64,000 bases of DNA, from the IMG/VR virus record IMGVR_UViG_3300010158_000027, positions 186,001 through 250,000 of that record; one strand, written 5' to 3'. The position numbers and the translations under genes were made by a program. The notes beneath the pieces are model-generated. The model was given only the letters and a program-made list of their open reading frames with translations. It ran no database searches and had not been told where the DNA came from. Below are positions 4,283 to 63,919 of this stretch, one piece after another (position 1 is the first letter of the stretch; every line of letters starts with the position of its first letter).

Positions 4283-4288
4283 ATATGT

Positions 4289-5209
4289 ATGGATGATGAA
4301 TCACTATTAATCGATTTAATACTAACAATTTTTGGGGAACCAAAAAGTGTTAATGAATATTCTGGACAAATTTCAGTTGACTGTCCTGTATGTTCATACG
4401 ATATTAAAGGTTTATCGAAAACCGACGGAAAGGGAAATTTAGAAATAAATTACCAAAATCATATTTATAAATGTTGGTCGTGTAGTGAAACTCACGAAAC
4501 TCATGGACATCTAGGGAAGTTGATAGATAAGTTCGGGTCAAAGAAAGATAAAAAAACCTACAAGCTAATCCGACCGGACAAGTTTGAAAAAAAGGAAAAA
4601 GTATTTAAAGAGTTAGAACTACCAAAAGAGTATAAAAAGTTTGACGAAATACATCCCCTTCACATACCAAGAAAAGAGGCATTTAACTACCTTAAAAAAC
4701 GAGGAATAACCCAAGAGATTATTGATAAATATCAAATTGGGATTTGTATTGAAGGTGACTACGCTGGACGAATAATCGTGCCGTCATTTAATAAAAATGG
4801 GGAATTAAACTTTTTTGTTTCAAGATCATGGAATCCCAAATCGAGACTTAAATACAAAAACCCAGAAGCAGCTAAAGACTTTCTTATCTTTAATGAAAGC
4901 TTAATTGATTTTAAAAAGGATATCTACATTGTTGAGGGTGTGTTTGATTCGTTTTTCTTGGAGAATTCGATAGCGCTACTAGGTAAATACATCAATGACA
5001 ATATGTGGGAAAAACTCTACACTAAGGCAAAAAAAGATATTATCATTTGTCTCGATGGGGACGCATATGACGACGCCAAAAAACTATACGATAAACTAAA
5101 CGGGGGTGACTTATATAATCGAGTAAAACTCGTCAAACTACCAAAAGATAAGGATGTTTGTGATTTAAGAGGGGATATCACACCTTACTATATACAAGAA
5201 AAAGATTAA
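4289..5209 (+). CDS. dnaG: DNA primase (zinc finger + TOPRIM)
   Basis: CPVC...CWSC zinc finger; IYIVEGVFD and ICLDGDA TOPRIM motifs; start moved to ATG 4289. Confidence 0.85.
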   Translation: MDDESLLIDLILTIFGEPKSVNEYSGQISVDCPVCSYDIKGLSKTDGKGNLEINYQNHIYKCWSCSETHETHGHLGKLIDKFGSKKDKKTYKLIRPDKFEKKEKVFKELELPKEYKKFDEIHPLHIPRKEAFNYLKKRGITQEIIDKYQIGICIEGDYAGRIIVPSFNKNGELNFFVSRSWNPKSRLKYKNPEAAKDFLIFNESLIDFKKDIYIVEGVFDSFFLENSIALLGKYINDNMWEKLYTKAKKDIIICLDGDAYDDAKKLYDKLNGGDLYNRVKLVKLPKDKDVCDLRGDITPYYIQEKD

Positions 5210-35475: not shown

Positions 35476-35499
35476 TTTGGAACACAAAAGTAGTATTGC

Positions 35500-35593
35500 T
35501 CCTAACAGCTGGGTGTATGAGAAGGTTTGCTTAGATGAACTTTAAAATTACCACTAAACTTGATAGCAAACTTTCTTATACACCTTGTTAGCA
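35500..35593 (+). repeat. attC-like site A (TCCTAAC...GTTAGCA, 94 bp)
   Basis: 20-bp inverted arms; near-identical to 62681-62774. Confidence 0.8.
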
Positions 35594-35664
35594 CCAGTAC
35601 GGTGATTTTAATATAAAACTTGATTAATTGGAAAATAAGTAGTATATTTGTAAAAAATAGAATT

Positions 35665-42279: not shown

Positions 42280-43155
42280 ACCGACCGAAACAGTCACCAC
42301 AGTTAAAAAAAGTGAATATAACACCTCCCTTTCTTTAAACGTGAAACTAAATTAAGTCATTGGGCCGTGTATGGTCCATTAAAATAAACCACGAAAGTGG
42401 GATAAAGTGAATTTGCGAGTGTTAGTAGATTTGCGTCTTGGGAAACTGAGGTCGAGTACACAAGTGGGATATCATCCGACCTTTAGTATTGAGGGCGACG
42501 CTTTAGGGAAAGTGGTTGGATGGAACGGCAATGTGGATTGTCAGTCTGAGGAGGGAACTCCAATAAGAATAACCCATAGGTATCAAGCGAAAAATATAAA
42601 TTCCAAATATATAATTGCGGATACCATTATAAAAGGGGACTTAAAACCGAAAGGTAAGATAAAGAACGAGTGGTGTCGCTATTATCCCTATCAAAGATCT
42701 ACCAAGATCTTGATATGAAGTAATCTTAAAATATGGAAATGGGGACATTTCACGAGGTAGTCAGGTATTCTGTTTTTCAAAAGAAAATGGATCCTAAACG
42801 GACCGCTACTTTGATTCATCCACAACACACAACTTATTACTAAATTAAGTAAAATTAACTAAAAATAAGCAAAAGTGTTCGTTACGATATGACGGAAGTT
42901 ACCCACCTATTCACTGGCTGTCAGTGGAACGTGATAACCGCAAGTTTGACCGTATTTTTATGAAAAATCTCTAGGACGTCGAAATCCGAATCAGGACGCA
43001 ATCTTGATGAGACAGGAGTAGTAAGAGAGTAGTTGTATCGTCAAGGAGTGATTGGTCTAACCAATCGGTAATGAGTGTTACAGGACAAAATCCTGTGGAT
43101 AAGAGTAGAATACATAATGACTCAAAAGACACTTAATAAAAACTATAATCTCAGG
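42280..43155 (+). ncRNA. Large ornate structured RNA, GOLLD-like candidate
   Basis: ~880 nt without a credible ORF, GC-richer than its flanks; many GNRA-capped stems; long-range GAGAGTAGTT/AACTATAATCTC closing stem; followed by a tRNA. 5' boundary approximate. Confidence 0.7.
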
Positions 43156-43176
43156 TTTTTTTTAATATTCAAATAT

Positions 43177-51612: not shown

Positions 51613-51684
51613 AGTCAGTTAGCTCAGTTGGTAGAGCAATCCCCTTAAAAGGACGTGTCATTGGTTCGAACCCTTTACTGGCTT
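51613..51684 (+). pseudogene. Degenerate tRNA behind its own TTGACA-N17-TAATAT promoter
   Basis: Perfect acceptor (AGTCAGT/ACTGGCT) and D-arm; anticodon and T stems poorly paired. Confidence 0.55.
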
Positions 51685-61689: not shown

Positions 61690-61820
61690 TGCTAACGGTT
61701 GAGGGTTTATTTAGTGGCGACTTTACGCACAAAACTTAATTAGAAATACAAAACTTGATAATATGAAAACTGATAATTTGAAACACGAAACTAAGCCATT
61801 GAATAAACCCTTTGTTATGC
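61690..61820 (+). repeat. attC-like site B (TGCTAAC...GTTATGC, 131 bp)
   Basis: Arms AGGGTTTATTTAGTGGC / GCCATTGAATAAACCCT. Confidence 0.8.
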
Positions 61821-62056
61821 GAAGTTTTTTTAAGAAACCAAGTAAGATTATAGAGGTGGAAATCCCAAAAGGTTTTTTCAATTGTGGCGTAAGTGTATGC
61901 AACCACTTTTTTGCAGATACAAATAATAGCGTAGATTGGAAAACGCTTAAATTTCCATTACCAAAACCATTAGGTAAAAAATGGGAGATATTAAGATATG
62001 ATATTGTGAATGAAGAAAAAACCATTGTAGAATTAGTTTCTCGTGGGTGGTTCTAA
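61763..62056 (+). CDS. Cassette 1 ORF (start lies inside site B)
   Basis: ATG within the attC-like loop; GTT crossover is an in-frame Val codon. Confidence 0.6.
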   Translation: MKTDNLKHETKPLNKPFVMRSFFKKPSKIIEVEIPKGFFNCGVSVCNHFFADTNNSVDWKTLKFPLPKPLGKKWEILRYDIVNEEKTIVELVSRGWF

Positions 62057-62062
62057 AATTTC

Positions 62063-62193
62063 GCATAACGATACTCAGATATATGGAGTTTTTTCTTAAA
62101 TTGAAATAATAAACTTAAATAATATGAATAAAGATAATAAGAACACAGAAGTTAATGACACAGATAAAAAATTACATATATCTGATGTTAGAA
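62063..62193 (+). repeat. attC-like site C (GCATAAC...GTTAGAA, 131 bp)
   Basis: Arms TCAGATATATG / CATATATCTGA. Confidence 0.8.
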
Positions 62194-62363
62194 ATAGTAT
62201 TCAAGAACGGATTAAAGGACATAAAAACAACATCAGTAGTTGTTTAGAGTTAATACAGACTAAAGGTAGAGAAACTGATGTTGTTATTAACTTATCAGTT
62301 AGTATTAGGAACTCAGAAATTAGAATATCTGAACTGGAATTAGTTCTTGAATATTGTTTCTAA
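62124..62363 (+). CDS. Cassette 2 ORF (start inside site C, stop inside site D)
   Basis: In-frame GTT; the TAA stop is the TAA of TTCTAAC. Confidence 0.6.
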   Translation: MNKDNKNTEVNDTDKKLHISDVRNSIQERIKGHKNNISSCLELIQTKGRETDVVINLSVSIRNSEIRISELELVLEYCF

Positions 62364-62434
62364 CGTTTTGCAACTACGCTTAACGGCTATCGGAAGCGAA
62401 CGTTTCAAGCCGTTGAGTGTAGATGCTGTTAGGT
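62358..62434 (+). repeat. attC-like site D (TTCTAAC...GTTAGGT, 77 bp)
   Basis: Arms CTACGCTTAACGGCT / AGCCGTTGAGTGTAG. Confidence 0.8.
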
Positions 62435-62464: not shown

Positions 62465-62686
62465 ATGATAATTGATTACAATAAAATAATAGAAAAGCAT
62501 TTAGGTGTTAATACTCCTCAATGGATAAAAGACAATGTATATAGTTGCATTAAAGAAATAGAAGAGCAAAATAAAAAAGAATGCAGTTATATCTCAGATG
62601 GAAGGTTTACATCAGGCAATTGTCTTTATTGCGGAAAATCCAAATACACTCACGGTTTATCGGTAGGTTCGTGCTATTGCAGCTAA
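62465..62686 (+). CDS. Cassette 3 ORF with CLYC motif (stop inside site E)
   Basis: Own AAAATT-ATG start; TAA within AGCTAAC. Confidence 0.6.
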   Translation: MIIDYNKIIEKHLGVNTPQWIKDNVYSCIKEIEEQNKKECSYISDGRFTSGNCLYCGKSKYTHGLSVGSCYCS

Positions 62687-62774
62687 CGATTGGGTGTATG
62701 AGAAGGTTTGCTTAGATGAACTTTCAAATTACCACGAATACTCATAGCAAACTTTCTTATACACCTTGTTACAA
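62681..62774 (+). repeat. attC-like site E (AGCTAAC...GTTACAA, 94 bp)
   Basis: 20-bp arms; sister of site A. Confidence 0.8.
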
Positions 62775-62835
62775 CCAGTACGGTTAATTTAAGATAAAAC
62801 TTGACTAATTGGAAAATAAGTAGTATATTTGTATT

Positions 62836-63559: not shown

Positions 63560-63919
63560 ATGAAAAATAAAATGCTTATAGTGGACGATGAGGAGGATAT
63601 CTTAATATTCTTATCATATCACTTTAATAAAAATGGTTTCGATGTTACAACAGCATTAGATGGAGCCATAGGGTTATCTGAATTTGAAAAGAAAAAATTC
63701 GATATTGTTATAACGGATATACGTATGCCAAATATGGATGGTATAGAAATGTGTGGTGAGATAAAAAAACAAGATGATACAACCCCAATCATATTTTTAA
63801 CTGCGGTTACAGATGATTATAAAATATTGCACGCAATGCGAACAGGTGCGTCCCAGTTTGTTGATAAACCAATCAAACTAGATGAACTAACAGATATCGT
63901 TAACGGTTTAATTAATTAA
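63560..63919 (+). CDS. Stand-alone response-regulator receiver domain (CheY-like)
   Basis: LIVDDE, VITDIRMPNMDG, IIFLTA, FVDKP. Confidence 0.92.
   Translation: MKNKMLIVDDEEDILIFLSYHFNKNGFDVTTALDGAIGLSEFEKKKFDIVITDIRMPNMDGIEMCGEIKKQDDTTPIIFLTAVTDDYKILHAMRTGASQFVDKPIKLDELTDIVNGLIN

Follow-up and report, generated by a model that had tools for sequence, protein, structure and literature searches.

Hairpin sites with loop start codons in frame with cassette genes in a phage that probably infects Flavobacteria

Anatomy of the hairpin array

The analysed window was a 64,000-nucleotide stretch (positions 186,001 to 250,000 of IMG/VR record IMGVR_UViG_3300010158_000027) of a 281-kb phage that probably infects Flavobacteria. 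It contained four hairpin sites (B to E) within 1.1 kb, three small ORFs located between them, and one lone hairpin site (A) elsewhere in the window (Table 1). All five sites had (C/A)TAAC...GTTA cores flanking 17-20-bp stems. Sites B, C and D shared no sequence apart from the cores. Only sites A and E carried a promoter-like motif, which lay downstream of the site. No Rfam hit was found in the region.

Table 1. Features of the hairpin array and of the lone site A; positions are those of the window.
Feature	Position	Strand	Structure	Further data
Site A	35500..35593	+	Lone short (94-bp) hairpin site, TCCTAAC...GTTAGCA; no loop start codon	90% identical to site E, including 60 nt downstream; RNA fold -35.2 kcal/mol, z -6.0
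Site B	61690..61820	+	Long (131-bp) hairpin site; R'' TGCTAAC 61690-61696, 5-nt spacer, 17-nt arms 61702-61718 / 61795-61811, TT, R' GTTATGC 61814-61820; loop holds AAAACTTGATAAT-ATG	RNA fold -32.2 kcal/mol, z -4.1
Site B loop start region and leader	61750..61816	+	A-rich context with AAAACTTGAT; ATG at 61763; 17 leader codons; GTT read as Val (61814-61816)	Start-context score in the 98.4th percentile of all ATGs in the genome; ATG in the unpaired loop
ORF1 as the fusion protein	61763..62056	+	97 aa, MKTDNLKHETKPLNKPF-V-MRSFF...; leader plus a beta-domain protein family of unknown function; own ATG directly after GTT (61817)	27 protein homologues and 68 loci; AlphaFold gives residues 1-20 as disordered and 27-94 as folded
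ORF1 module	61815..62069	+	Exchangeable unit from TT of GTT to AAC, ending in 10-12-nt inverted repeats (GTTATGCGAAGT / ATTTCGCATAAC)	Compensatory changes at the two ends
Site C	62063..62193	+	Long (131-bp) hairpin site; R'' GCATAAC 62063-62069, 5-nt spacer, 20-nt arms 62075-62094 / 62166-62185, T, R' GTTAGAA 62187-62193	Same body in 31 copies with 23 different downstream ORFs and with different upstream ORFs in nearly every copy
Site C loop start region and leader	62110..62189	+	TAAACTTAAATAAT; ATG at 62124; 21 leader codons; GTT read as Val (62187-62189)	Start-context score in the 99.3rd percentile of all ATGs; leader found on more than 60 unrelated proteins
ORF2	62124..62363	+	79 aa, MNKDNKNTEVNDTDKKLHISD-V-RNSIQ...; no Met after the Val; stop codon is the TAA inside TTCTAAC of site D	5' and 3' ends are 27 nt, 85% complementary
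Site D	62358..62434	+	Short (77-bp) hairpin site, TTCTAAC...GTTAGGT; arms 62370-62388 / 62408-62426; no loop start; GTT frame closes after 8 codons	RNA fold -39.3 kcal/mol, z -5.8
ORF3	62465..62686	+	73 aa; own start; stop codon is the TAA inside AGCTAAC of site E	Start context in the 98.7th percentile
Site E	62681..62774	+	Short (94-bp) hairpin site, AGCTAAC...GTTACAA; arms 62693-62712 / 62746-62765; last site of the array	RNA fold -35 kcal/mol, z -6.3

The first-pass annotation had stated that the loops of sites B and C encode short leaders that cross the GTT as a Val codon and continue into the downstream ORF, and this was confirmed directly from the sequence. Beyond the junction, the reading frames of B and C run on for 80 and 58 codons. 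ORF2 can only start at the loop ATG of site C. The functions of ORF1, ORF2 and ORF3 were not revealed by profile searches, since there was no significant Pfam hit (only matches with E > 0.02, below cut-off) and no PHROG family. The ORF1 fold had no PDB match at E <= 0.001.

To check whether such sites could arise by chance, 970 kb of this and related phage DNA was scanned for hairpins. A first, looser scan was too noisy (991 hits against 304 in shuffles). A strict scan gave 185 sites against 0.33 in shuffled sequence. The stems paired without gaps, and in nearly all sites the spacer was 5 (4-6) nt after AAC but only 1-2 (0-3) nt before GTT. Stem imperfections were mostly G.T on the top (sense) strand (G.T 274 against A.C 46), and for sites B, C, D and E the top strand folded better as ssDNA.

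Junction frame and start context of the loop ATGs

The first-pass annotation had proposed to check whether the frame of GTT is biased and whether homologues carry different leaders at the same Val codon. Both checks came out in favour. To examine the frame, 93 distinct long sites in about 1 Mb of related phage DNA were analysed for a loop ATG joined to an ORF of at least 30 codons. Because one-codon "leaders" caused by ...GATGTT inflated the count in frame 1, leaders of at least 8 codons were required. Fusions in the GTT frame and the other two frames numbered 63, 6 and 1 (chi-square p about 1e-16), whereas for short sites the numbers were 1, 0 and 0. Among 55 site clusters that played no part in how the loci were collected, the counts were 29, 8 and 1. 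It should be noted that 23 of the 93 long sites showed no fusion across the junction and that site clusters may share ancestry, so they are not fully independent samples. Overall, about 60 site families in dozens of phages showed this design.

The frame was also examined at the DNA level, independently of gene calls. The 3' arm of site C plus GTT was found 46 times, and all 46 copies were followed by an open frame, with about 25 unrelated ORFs. The codon after GTT was M, I, S or R. Leader lengths of 19-23 codons occurred, and all stayed in frame; the frame was kept across loop indels of 1-4 codons. In bacterial and archaeal genomes, the site C arm was found in only 5 contigs, in bins of inconsistent taxonomy, so no link to a host integron was found. 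A search of viral contigs with the site B arm gave no further copy.

Homologues of ORF1 carried at least 9 unrelated leaders joined at the same GTT codon, and distant homologues lacked the leader. ORF2 homologues always carried a leader. Of 61 fused ORF modules, 47 had no usable ATG of their own, that is, none within 10 codons of the junction; 18 of these had no ATG at all, and 29 had their first one after codon 10. ORF1 and 13 of the 61 modules had an ATG right after GTT. The leader of ORF1 is therefore not strictly needed.

The start contexts were compared next. The genome lacks Shine-Dalgarno motifs (6 of 205 genes), and the loop ATGs have the start context typical of this phage. In contrast, the ATG after GTT scored in the 2nd percentile of gene starts and sits at the foot of the stem. 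The same A-rich context recurred in 31 independent site clusters, and the loop was unpaired in RNA folds. The motif AAAACTTRAT was rejected as a general promoter, since it had 3 matches against 2.4 expected, and all three lay at the sites.

Exchange at two junctions and the linked recombinase

Homology among five contigs carrying ORF1 started at GTT or after the upstream AAC and always stopped after CATAAC. Of the informative homology blocks, 10 were GTT..AAC, 5 were AAC..AAC and none was GTT..GTT. Every informative right end fell at AAC, and the classical integron unit, an ORF plus its downstream site, was seen at 0 of 21 informative right ends. Close ORF1 copies had unrelated downstream hairpins. 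Polaribacter phages Freya_1 and Freya_10 differed by a 4.9-kb block bounded by AAC. In 85 consecutive pairs, the bases after GTT matched the complement of the bases before the next AAC at 5.47 of 8 positions, against 2.8 for same-site and random pairs, and compensatory changes occurred across the ORF1 family.

No tyrosine recombinase was found in this genome, either with the PF00589 profile or with the recombinase of related phages, although the record is 96% complete and a 299-kb contig of the same phage could not be searched whole. In related phages, a Xer-like tyrosine recombinase of 266-270 aa is encoded just downstream of the arrays. Most of the 33 loci that encode it, and nearly all with enough upstream sequence to judge, have a co-oriented array, which in most of them ends 86-900 nt upstream of the gene. 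In one record the recombinase gene lay 48 kb from one array and looked unlinked, but it has its own array directly upstream. The protein scored 146-152 bits on TIGR02249 (cut-off 265), matched in two stretches, and had 41 residues where IntI4 (2a3v) has 89, that is, it lacks about 48 residues at the position of the extra domain of IntI4.

Interpretation and comparison with known systems

These findings indicate that the window holds a small array of a cassette system found in phages whose nearest cultured relatives infect Flavobacteriia. Two kinds of module alternate: the hairpin body, bounded by TAAC and GTTA, and the ORF module, bounded by GTT and AAC, whose two ends are complementary to each other. 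Long hairpins (about 130 bp) carry in their unpaired loop an A-rich, G-poor initiation region of the Shine-Dalgarno-free kind used by this phage, together with an ATG. It is inferred from sequence statistics, and not from measured translation, that the ribosome loads in the loop, translates a leader of 14-45 codons (median 21) through the 3' arm, reads the junction GTT as Val and continues into the ORF module. Most ORF modules have no start codon of their own and are built in the matching frame, and the ORF often ends at the TAA inside the TAAC of the next site. Short hairpins (about 77-96 bp) have no start, and the genes behind them bring their own. Hairpin bodies and ORF modules have been recombined at both junctions. 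The Xer-like recombinase is the likely enzyme, and the array of this phage is either a remnant or depends on an enzyme supplied in trans. This explanation is considered likely.

The suggestion of the first-pass annotation that these sites donate a translation start and an N-terminal leader was thus supported, with two further corrections. The elements, which it had called cassettes, are not classical integron cassettes, because AAC is a second breakpoint and is always the right-hand one, so that a hairpin often travels with the ORF it starts. In addition, expression was said to be coupled to array position, whereas it depends on which kind of hairpin lies upstream (long with a start, or short without).

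Alternatively, each hairpin with its leader could simply be the 5' end of the gene behind it, the mobile cassette being hairpin plus ORF (AAC to AAC), so that nothing is donated. In agreement with this, three of the sequences compared share exactly the body of site B plus ORF1, bounded by AAC on both sides; all 4 ORF modules seen in two or more contexts keep their upstream body and change the downstream one; the Freya_10 insertion starts with a hairpin body right after AAC; and 5 AAC..AAC blocks were found. However, 10 blocks, plus 2 more left ends, break exactly at GTT at 85% DNA identity or more, ORF1 copies about equally diverged from the window's copy (85-95% aa identity) sit behind unrelated leaders, and the site C leader precedes about 25 unrelated ORFs. 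Both kinds of event therefore occur, and this view, unlikely as a replacement, describes part of the truth.

It is less likely that the leader ORF works only by translational coupling, as ORF-11 does in attI1, melting the hairpin and handing ribosomes to a downstream start. Eleven long sites do have a leader ORF that stops 2-18 codons after GTT, and 7 of them are followed by an own-start ORF 27-127 nt downstream. Short ORFs in attC are reported to relieve the hairpin block (PMC8876359), and the leaders are poorly conserved, A-rich and predicted to be disordered. Nevertheless, in B, C and 61 other modules there is no stop, so the product is a fusion and not a coupled pair, and coupling explains a minority class only.

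It is also doubtful that the hairpins are RNA elements (for processing, stability or termination) and that the genes start at or after the junction. The G.T bias on the sense strand and the very stable RNA folds (-18 to -39 kcal/mol) point to selection at the RNA level, which would make the hairpins more than recombination sites, and some modules have an ATG right after GTT. However, the start-less modules, the frame kept across loop indels and the poor context of the ATG after GTT speak against this, and the frame counts are unexplained by an RNA role alone.

An ordinary integron cassette cluster without an integrase (a CALIN), with incidental loop ORFs and crossover only at G|TT on the bottom strand by a host IntI, is very unlikely: although the cores fit RYYYAAC/GTTRRRY, the cassette ends are complementary as in integrons, and CALINs recombined by IntI1 are known in virulent phages, including a Polaribacter phage (Qi et al. 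2023, PMC9892861), the missing ORF-plus-downstream-site unit, the ungapped stems, the better folding of the top strand (although the strand used in recombination is unknown), the IntI-unlike linked recombinase and the few, taxonomically inconsistent genome-bin contigs with the site C arm speak against it, and the frame bias rules out incidental ORFs.

Integron attC sites and gene cassettes, including CALINs, share with this system imperfect AAC...GTT hairpins between short, mostly promoter-less ORFs in one orientation, complementary cassette ends, and a Xer/IntI-clade tyrosine recombinase, here linked to the arrays in related phages. They differ in that here a constant asymmetric 5 x 1-2 nt internal loop replaces extrahelical bases, homology breaks at both AAC and GTT, the sense strand appears to be the better folder, the recombinase lacks the IntI insert and lies downstream of the array and co-oriented with it rather than divergent at an attI end, and the sites carry a start codon and leader matched in frame to start-less ORFs. 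In ORF-11 / ORF-18 of attI1 in class 1 integrons, and in short ORFs in attC sites (Hanau-Bercot 2002 and Jacquier 2009, as reviewed in PMC8876359), a small ORF with its own initiation region likewise spans the crossover point, helps express cassettes lacking initiation signals and counters the hairpin block to ribosomes. There, however, the ORF ends at a stop supplied by the cassette and works by coupling or re-initiation, fusion proteins being rare accidents; here, fusion is the rule (63 of 93 long sites). Fused cassettes and AAC(6')-Ib N-terminal variants in class 1 integrons (PMC8876359, PMC4670013) also show a gene without its own start translated from an upstream start codon, giving variable N-termini, but they are sporadic products of attC loss or of a particular insertion. 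PeSL motifs of T4-type phages (PMC2839356, PMC4122927) are repeated regulatory stem-loop elements that flank small variable ORFs in hyperplastic regions and mediate modular shuffling; they consist of a promoter plus a terminator and recombine by homology, whereas here neighbouring hairpins differ in sequence, the junctions are exact, a tyrosine recombinase is linked and a start codon is supplied rather than a promoter. Synthetic attC sites embedded in coding sequences (Nivina et al. 2020, PMC7439510) show that structure-specific hairpin recombination sites can be placed inside almost any sequence, which would include protein-coding sequence; the present case would be a natural and systematic use of the same freedom. 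No description of loop-encoded in-frame leaders or of this array and recombinase arrangement was found in the literature searched, which was incomplete.

A broader reading is about as likely as not. Many phages with flavobacterial affinities may carry an unrecognised relative of the integron, arranged partly as its mirror image, with a small Xer-like recombinase without the IntI domain at the 3' end of an array of sense-strand hairpins. The hairpins would then act as plug-in expression adaptors for any ORF module of matching frame. That would make it a natural system for shuffling small phage proteins, many of which are probably used against the host, with built-in translation.

Integron cassettes are usually thought to depend on an outside promoter and, where they lack initiation signals, on lucky coupling, and the hairpins themselves are known to block ribosomes. 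Here the recombination site appears to solve that problem itself by placing the start codon in its loop, and the cargo genes have adapted by giving up their own starts and fixing their frame to the junction. This shows how mobile ORFs can be expressed in hosts that do not use Shine-Dalgarno sequences. The finding points to a recombinase and site pair distinct from IntI/attC that could be tested in cultured Polaribacter and Cellulophaga phages, and it may offer a new structure-specific recombination tool that tolerates coding sequence. It also implies that many small metagenomic phage proteins carry an N-terminal segment derived from a recombination site, which will mislead homology searches and clustering.

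Genomic setting and anatomy of the hairpin sites

The window belongs to a virus record of 281,269 bp, which was estimated to be 96% complete. It has about 31% G+C, essentially all genes lie on the + strand, and it carries a full-length GOLLD RNA (RF02032, 277 bits) and a tRNA gene, both located between site A and the array. Its thymidylate synthase is closest to that of Flavobacterium phage immuto, at 54% identity. Its genes lack Shine-Dalgarno motifs (6 of 205), and the start codons sit in A/T-rich, G/C-poor contexts with A at -3. It may be inferred from these features that the host belongs to the Flavobacteriia.

Sites B and C were both found to be 131 bp long. Each consists of a core ending in AAC, a 5-nt spacer, a 17-20-nt arm, a long loop, the complementary arm, 1-2 nt and then GTTA. 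In both sites, the frame opened by the loop ATG runs through the 3' arm, reads GTT as Val and continues into the downstream ORF. The observation of the first-pass annotation that these sites contain a start codon and a leader in frame with the crossover was confirmed. ORF1 has an ATG right after GTT, ORF2 has no Met at all after the junction, and ORF3 starts on its own. An ATG inside the 3' arm of site D is also in frame with ORF3 and would add 14 codons; however, its start context is very poor (0.2nd percentile), so the ORF3 start listed in the table is preferred. The three remaining sites (A, D and E) are short and have no loop start.

Positions of the features discussed (window coordinates unless a locus is named)
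Feature	Sequence	Position	Strand	Description
Site A	window	35500-35593		short site without a loop start
Repeats including sites A and E	window	35494-35652 and 62675-62833		direct repeats 27 kb apart
GOLLD RNA	window	42753-43157	+	RF02032
tRNA gene	window	51613-51684	+
Site B	window	61690-61820		long site
Site B loop ATG	window	61763		17 codons before GTT
Site B GTT	window	61814		read as Val; frame continues for 80 codons
ATG of ORF1 after GTT	window	61817
Site C	window	62063-62193		long site
Site C loop ATG	window	62124		21 codons before GTT
Site C GTT	window	62187		read as Val; frame continues for 58 codons
Site D	window	62358-62434		short site without a loop start
ATG in the 3' arm of site D	window	62423-62425		in frame with ORF3
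ORF3 start	window	62465		own start
Site E	window	62681-62774		short site without a loop start
Promoter-like motif	window	62809-62831		Bacteroidota type
Receiver domain-like protein	window	63560-63919	+	119 aa, just after the array
Adjacent hairpins	L015	376-594		15 nt apart
Frame +1 fusion	L007	about 4286-4500		junction read as Leu
Xer-like recombinase downstream of an array	L145	10001-10777		example; also L143 and L147
Weak hairpin	L161	4094-4243		loop contains the start of the Freya recombinase ORF

To check whether such sites could arise by chance, a strict scan was performed that required TAAC...GTTA, 16-nt arms with a score of at least 14, and spacers of 4-6 and 0-3 nt. It found 185 sites in 970 kb of this genome and related loci, against 0.33 in shuffled sequence. 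The sites fall into two length classes, about 58-96 bp and about 112-196 bp. The spacer asymmetry (5 nt against 1-2 nt) is nearly constant and fixes the orientation of each site, and no site was detected on both strands.

It is noteworthy that sites A and E are 90% identical over 160 bp, including 60 nt downstream. The shared downstream part holds a promoter-like motif of the Bacteroidota type (TTG ... TAtaTTTG) ahead of an own-start gene. The bases after GTT in site A (GTTAGCAcCAg) also resemble the complement of the bases before AAC in site B, so the 26 kb between them is formally bracketed like one giant module. The protein encoded just after the array has the sequence hallmarks of a response-regulator receiver domain, as judged by eye from the translation.

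Leaders, junction frame and start codons

To determine whether homologous ORFs carry different leaders at the same codon, relatives of ORF1 were collected, which gave 27 protein homologues and 68 loci. The conserved part begins at V-M-R (GTT ATG CGA), and upstream of it there are at least 9 unrelated hairpins, each with a loop ATG that is in frame and open. Distant homologues outside any array start with their own Met just before the folded core. AlphaFold predicts residues 1-20 of the window protein as disordered and residues 27-94 as a confident beta domain; the leader is therefore an add-on to the fold. ORF2 gave the mirror result. Its true homologues all carry the leader, and more than 60 unrelated small proteins share only this leader, with V or L at one position, and then diverge right after the Val.

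To avoid bias from gene calling, viral contigs were searched for the bare 21-mer made of the 3' arm of site C plus GTT. It occurs 45 times in 39 phage contigs of 4.6-325 kb. Counting the window, all 46 copies are followed by an open frame of at least 30 codons in the GTT frame (one is cut at 18 by a contig end). About 25 unrelated ORFs are involved, and the codon after GTT encodes M, I, S or R. An in-frame loop ATG is present in 45 of the 46 copies, and leader lengths of 19, 20, 21, 22 and 23 codons occur, so loop indels have kept the frame. The site C arm also occurs on five contigs (L115-L119) binned as Methanolobus, Methanosarcinaceae (a 638-kb contig), Eubacteriales and Ignavibacteria, which are probably phage or prophage DNA in the bins.

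The frame of GTT was then examined over all 93 distinct combinations of a long site with its downstream sequence. A loop ATG at least 8 codons upstream joined to an ORF of at least 30 codons occurs 63, 6 and 1 times in frames 0, +1 and +2, whereas for 53 short-site combinations the counts are 1, 0 and 0. When the site C family and the sites upstream of ORF1, which were the two classes used to collect the loci, were left out, the remaining 55 independent long-site clusters still gave 29, 8 and 1, although site clusters may share ancestry. The six frame +1 cases are real fusions too, with the junction read as Leu. ORFs fused in this way (for example in loci L007, L095 and L107) include proteins with a DNA cytosine methyltransferase-like motif (LNLYAGIGG).

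Whether the loop starts are the real starts was assessed by indirect means only. Of 61 distinct ORF modules fused in frame 0, 13 have an ATG right after GTT, 18 have no in-frame ATG at all, and 29 have their first one beyond codon 10. A start-context matrix was built from 205 genes of this genome. On this matrix, the loop ATGs of sites B and C score in the 98.4th and 99.3rd percentiles of all ATGs, which is typical of true gene starts. In contrast, the ATG after GTT in ORF1 scores in the 47th percentile of all ATGs and the 2nd percentile of gene starts. The same context as that of the loop ATGs (A-rich, almost G-free from -20 to -1, A at -13/-12 and -3/-2, T at -1) recurs in 31 independent site clusters. 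In RNA folds, the stems are strong (-32, -18.5, -39 and -35 kcal/mol), and the loop ATG is unpaired, while the ATG after GTT lies at the foot of the stem.

Module boundaries and the linked recombinase

The cores and the array look like an integron, and clusters of attC sites have been reported in virulent phages, including a Polaribacter phage (PMC9892861). One integron hallmark is present: the bases after each GTT are complementary to the bases before the next AAC. This complementarity covers 10 bp for ORF1 and 27 nt for ORF2 in the window, and 5.5 of 8 positions in 85 pairs against 2.8 in controls. The ORF1 family shows clear compensatory changes between the two ends. In locus L015, two hairpins lie only 15 nt apart, joined by GTTATAAAA-N10-TTTTATAAC, which looks like an ORF module reduced to its two complementary ends (an "empty" cassette).

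However, other defining features fail. Close ORF1 copies share the ORF module exactly from GTT to ...CATAAC, but the hairpins downstream of it are unrelated. The sequences G000, L014 and L015 also share the upstream body of site B, starting right after AAC. Among informative blocks at 85% identity or more, 10 run from GTT to AAC and 5 from AAC to AAC, and none has the classical form of an ORF plus its downstream site. In all four ORF modules seen in two or more contexts, the upstream body is kept and the downstream one changes. The stems have no bulged bases.

Notably, the top strand folds better than the bottom strand as single-stranded DNA. Under symmetric scoring over the window array and loci L001-L113, stem imperfections are G.T on the top (sense) strand 274 times and A.C 46 times, whereas base composition alone predicts about 1:1. 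These wobbles include a conserved one in the extended core (AGT opposite ATT). This points to selection on the RNA or on the top DNA strand.

No recombinase was found in this genome, the record of which is estimated to be 96% complete. Of ten other site-bearing records searched, three encode a conserved tyrosine recombinase of 266-270 aa. It matches archaeal XerA end to end, but it scores below the cut-offs for XerA and IntI, and it has 41 residues where IntI4 has 89, so it lacks the IntI-specific domain. A search with this protein family found 33 viral loci (L128-L160). In most of them, and nearly all with enough upstream sequence to judge, an array of the same hairpins, with up to 14 sites, lies directly upstream and co-oriented. 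The last site ends 86-900 nt before the gene in most of these loci, and almost no sites lie downstream.

The closest cultured relatives of the recombinase are the "integrases" of Polaribacter phages Freya_1 to Freya_10 and of Cellulophaga phage Ingeline, at 38-39% identity. The isolation paper read this integrase only as a sign of possible lysogeny (PMC8776804). Over the region compared (loci L161/L164, MT732472.1, versus L162/L163, MT732463.1), Freya_1 and Freya_10 are near-identical (99.8-100%) except for a 4.9-kb block of 12 small genes, bounded by AAC, inserted just upstream of the integrase. The block begins right after ...TTTACAAC with a hairpin whose loop ATG is the annotated start of CDS Freya10_77, and it ends with ...TTGCTAAC. 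The Freya system is a distant relative, and its hairpins score weakly in the scan. Genome sizes across Freya_1 to Freya_10 (44.0-48.9 kb) track the position of the integrase, and the ORF of the Freya recombinase itself starts inside the loop of a weak hairpin.

Precedents and interpretation of the array

Known precedents are ORF-11 and ORF-18 in attI1, short ORFs in attC that relieve the hairpin block, and occasional fused cassettes (PMC8876359). Those work by coupling or arise by accident. In the literature searched, which was not complete, no description was found of a recombination site that systematically supplies an in-frame start and leader, nor of this arrangement of array and recombinase.

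The central idea of the first-pass annotation, that the sites donate a translation start and leader to the cassette behind them, is therefore supported and turns out to be general, although translation, the enzyme and the substrate strand are all inferred. The underlying model of a classical attC with a single crossover at GTT needs revision. A hairpin often moves together with the ORF it starts. The proposed coupling of expression to array position should likewise be read as dependence on the kind of hairpin upstream. The array is best seen as alternating hairpin modules and ORF modules that have been exchanged at two exact junctions. On this inferred reading, long hairpins act as translation adaptors for start-less ORF modules of matching frame, whereas short hairpins do not, and the genes behind them carry their own starts.
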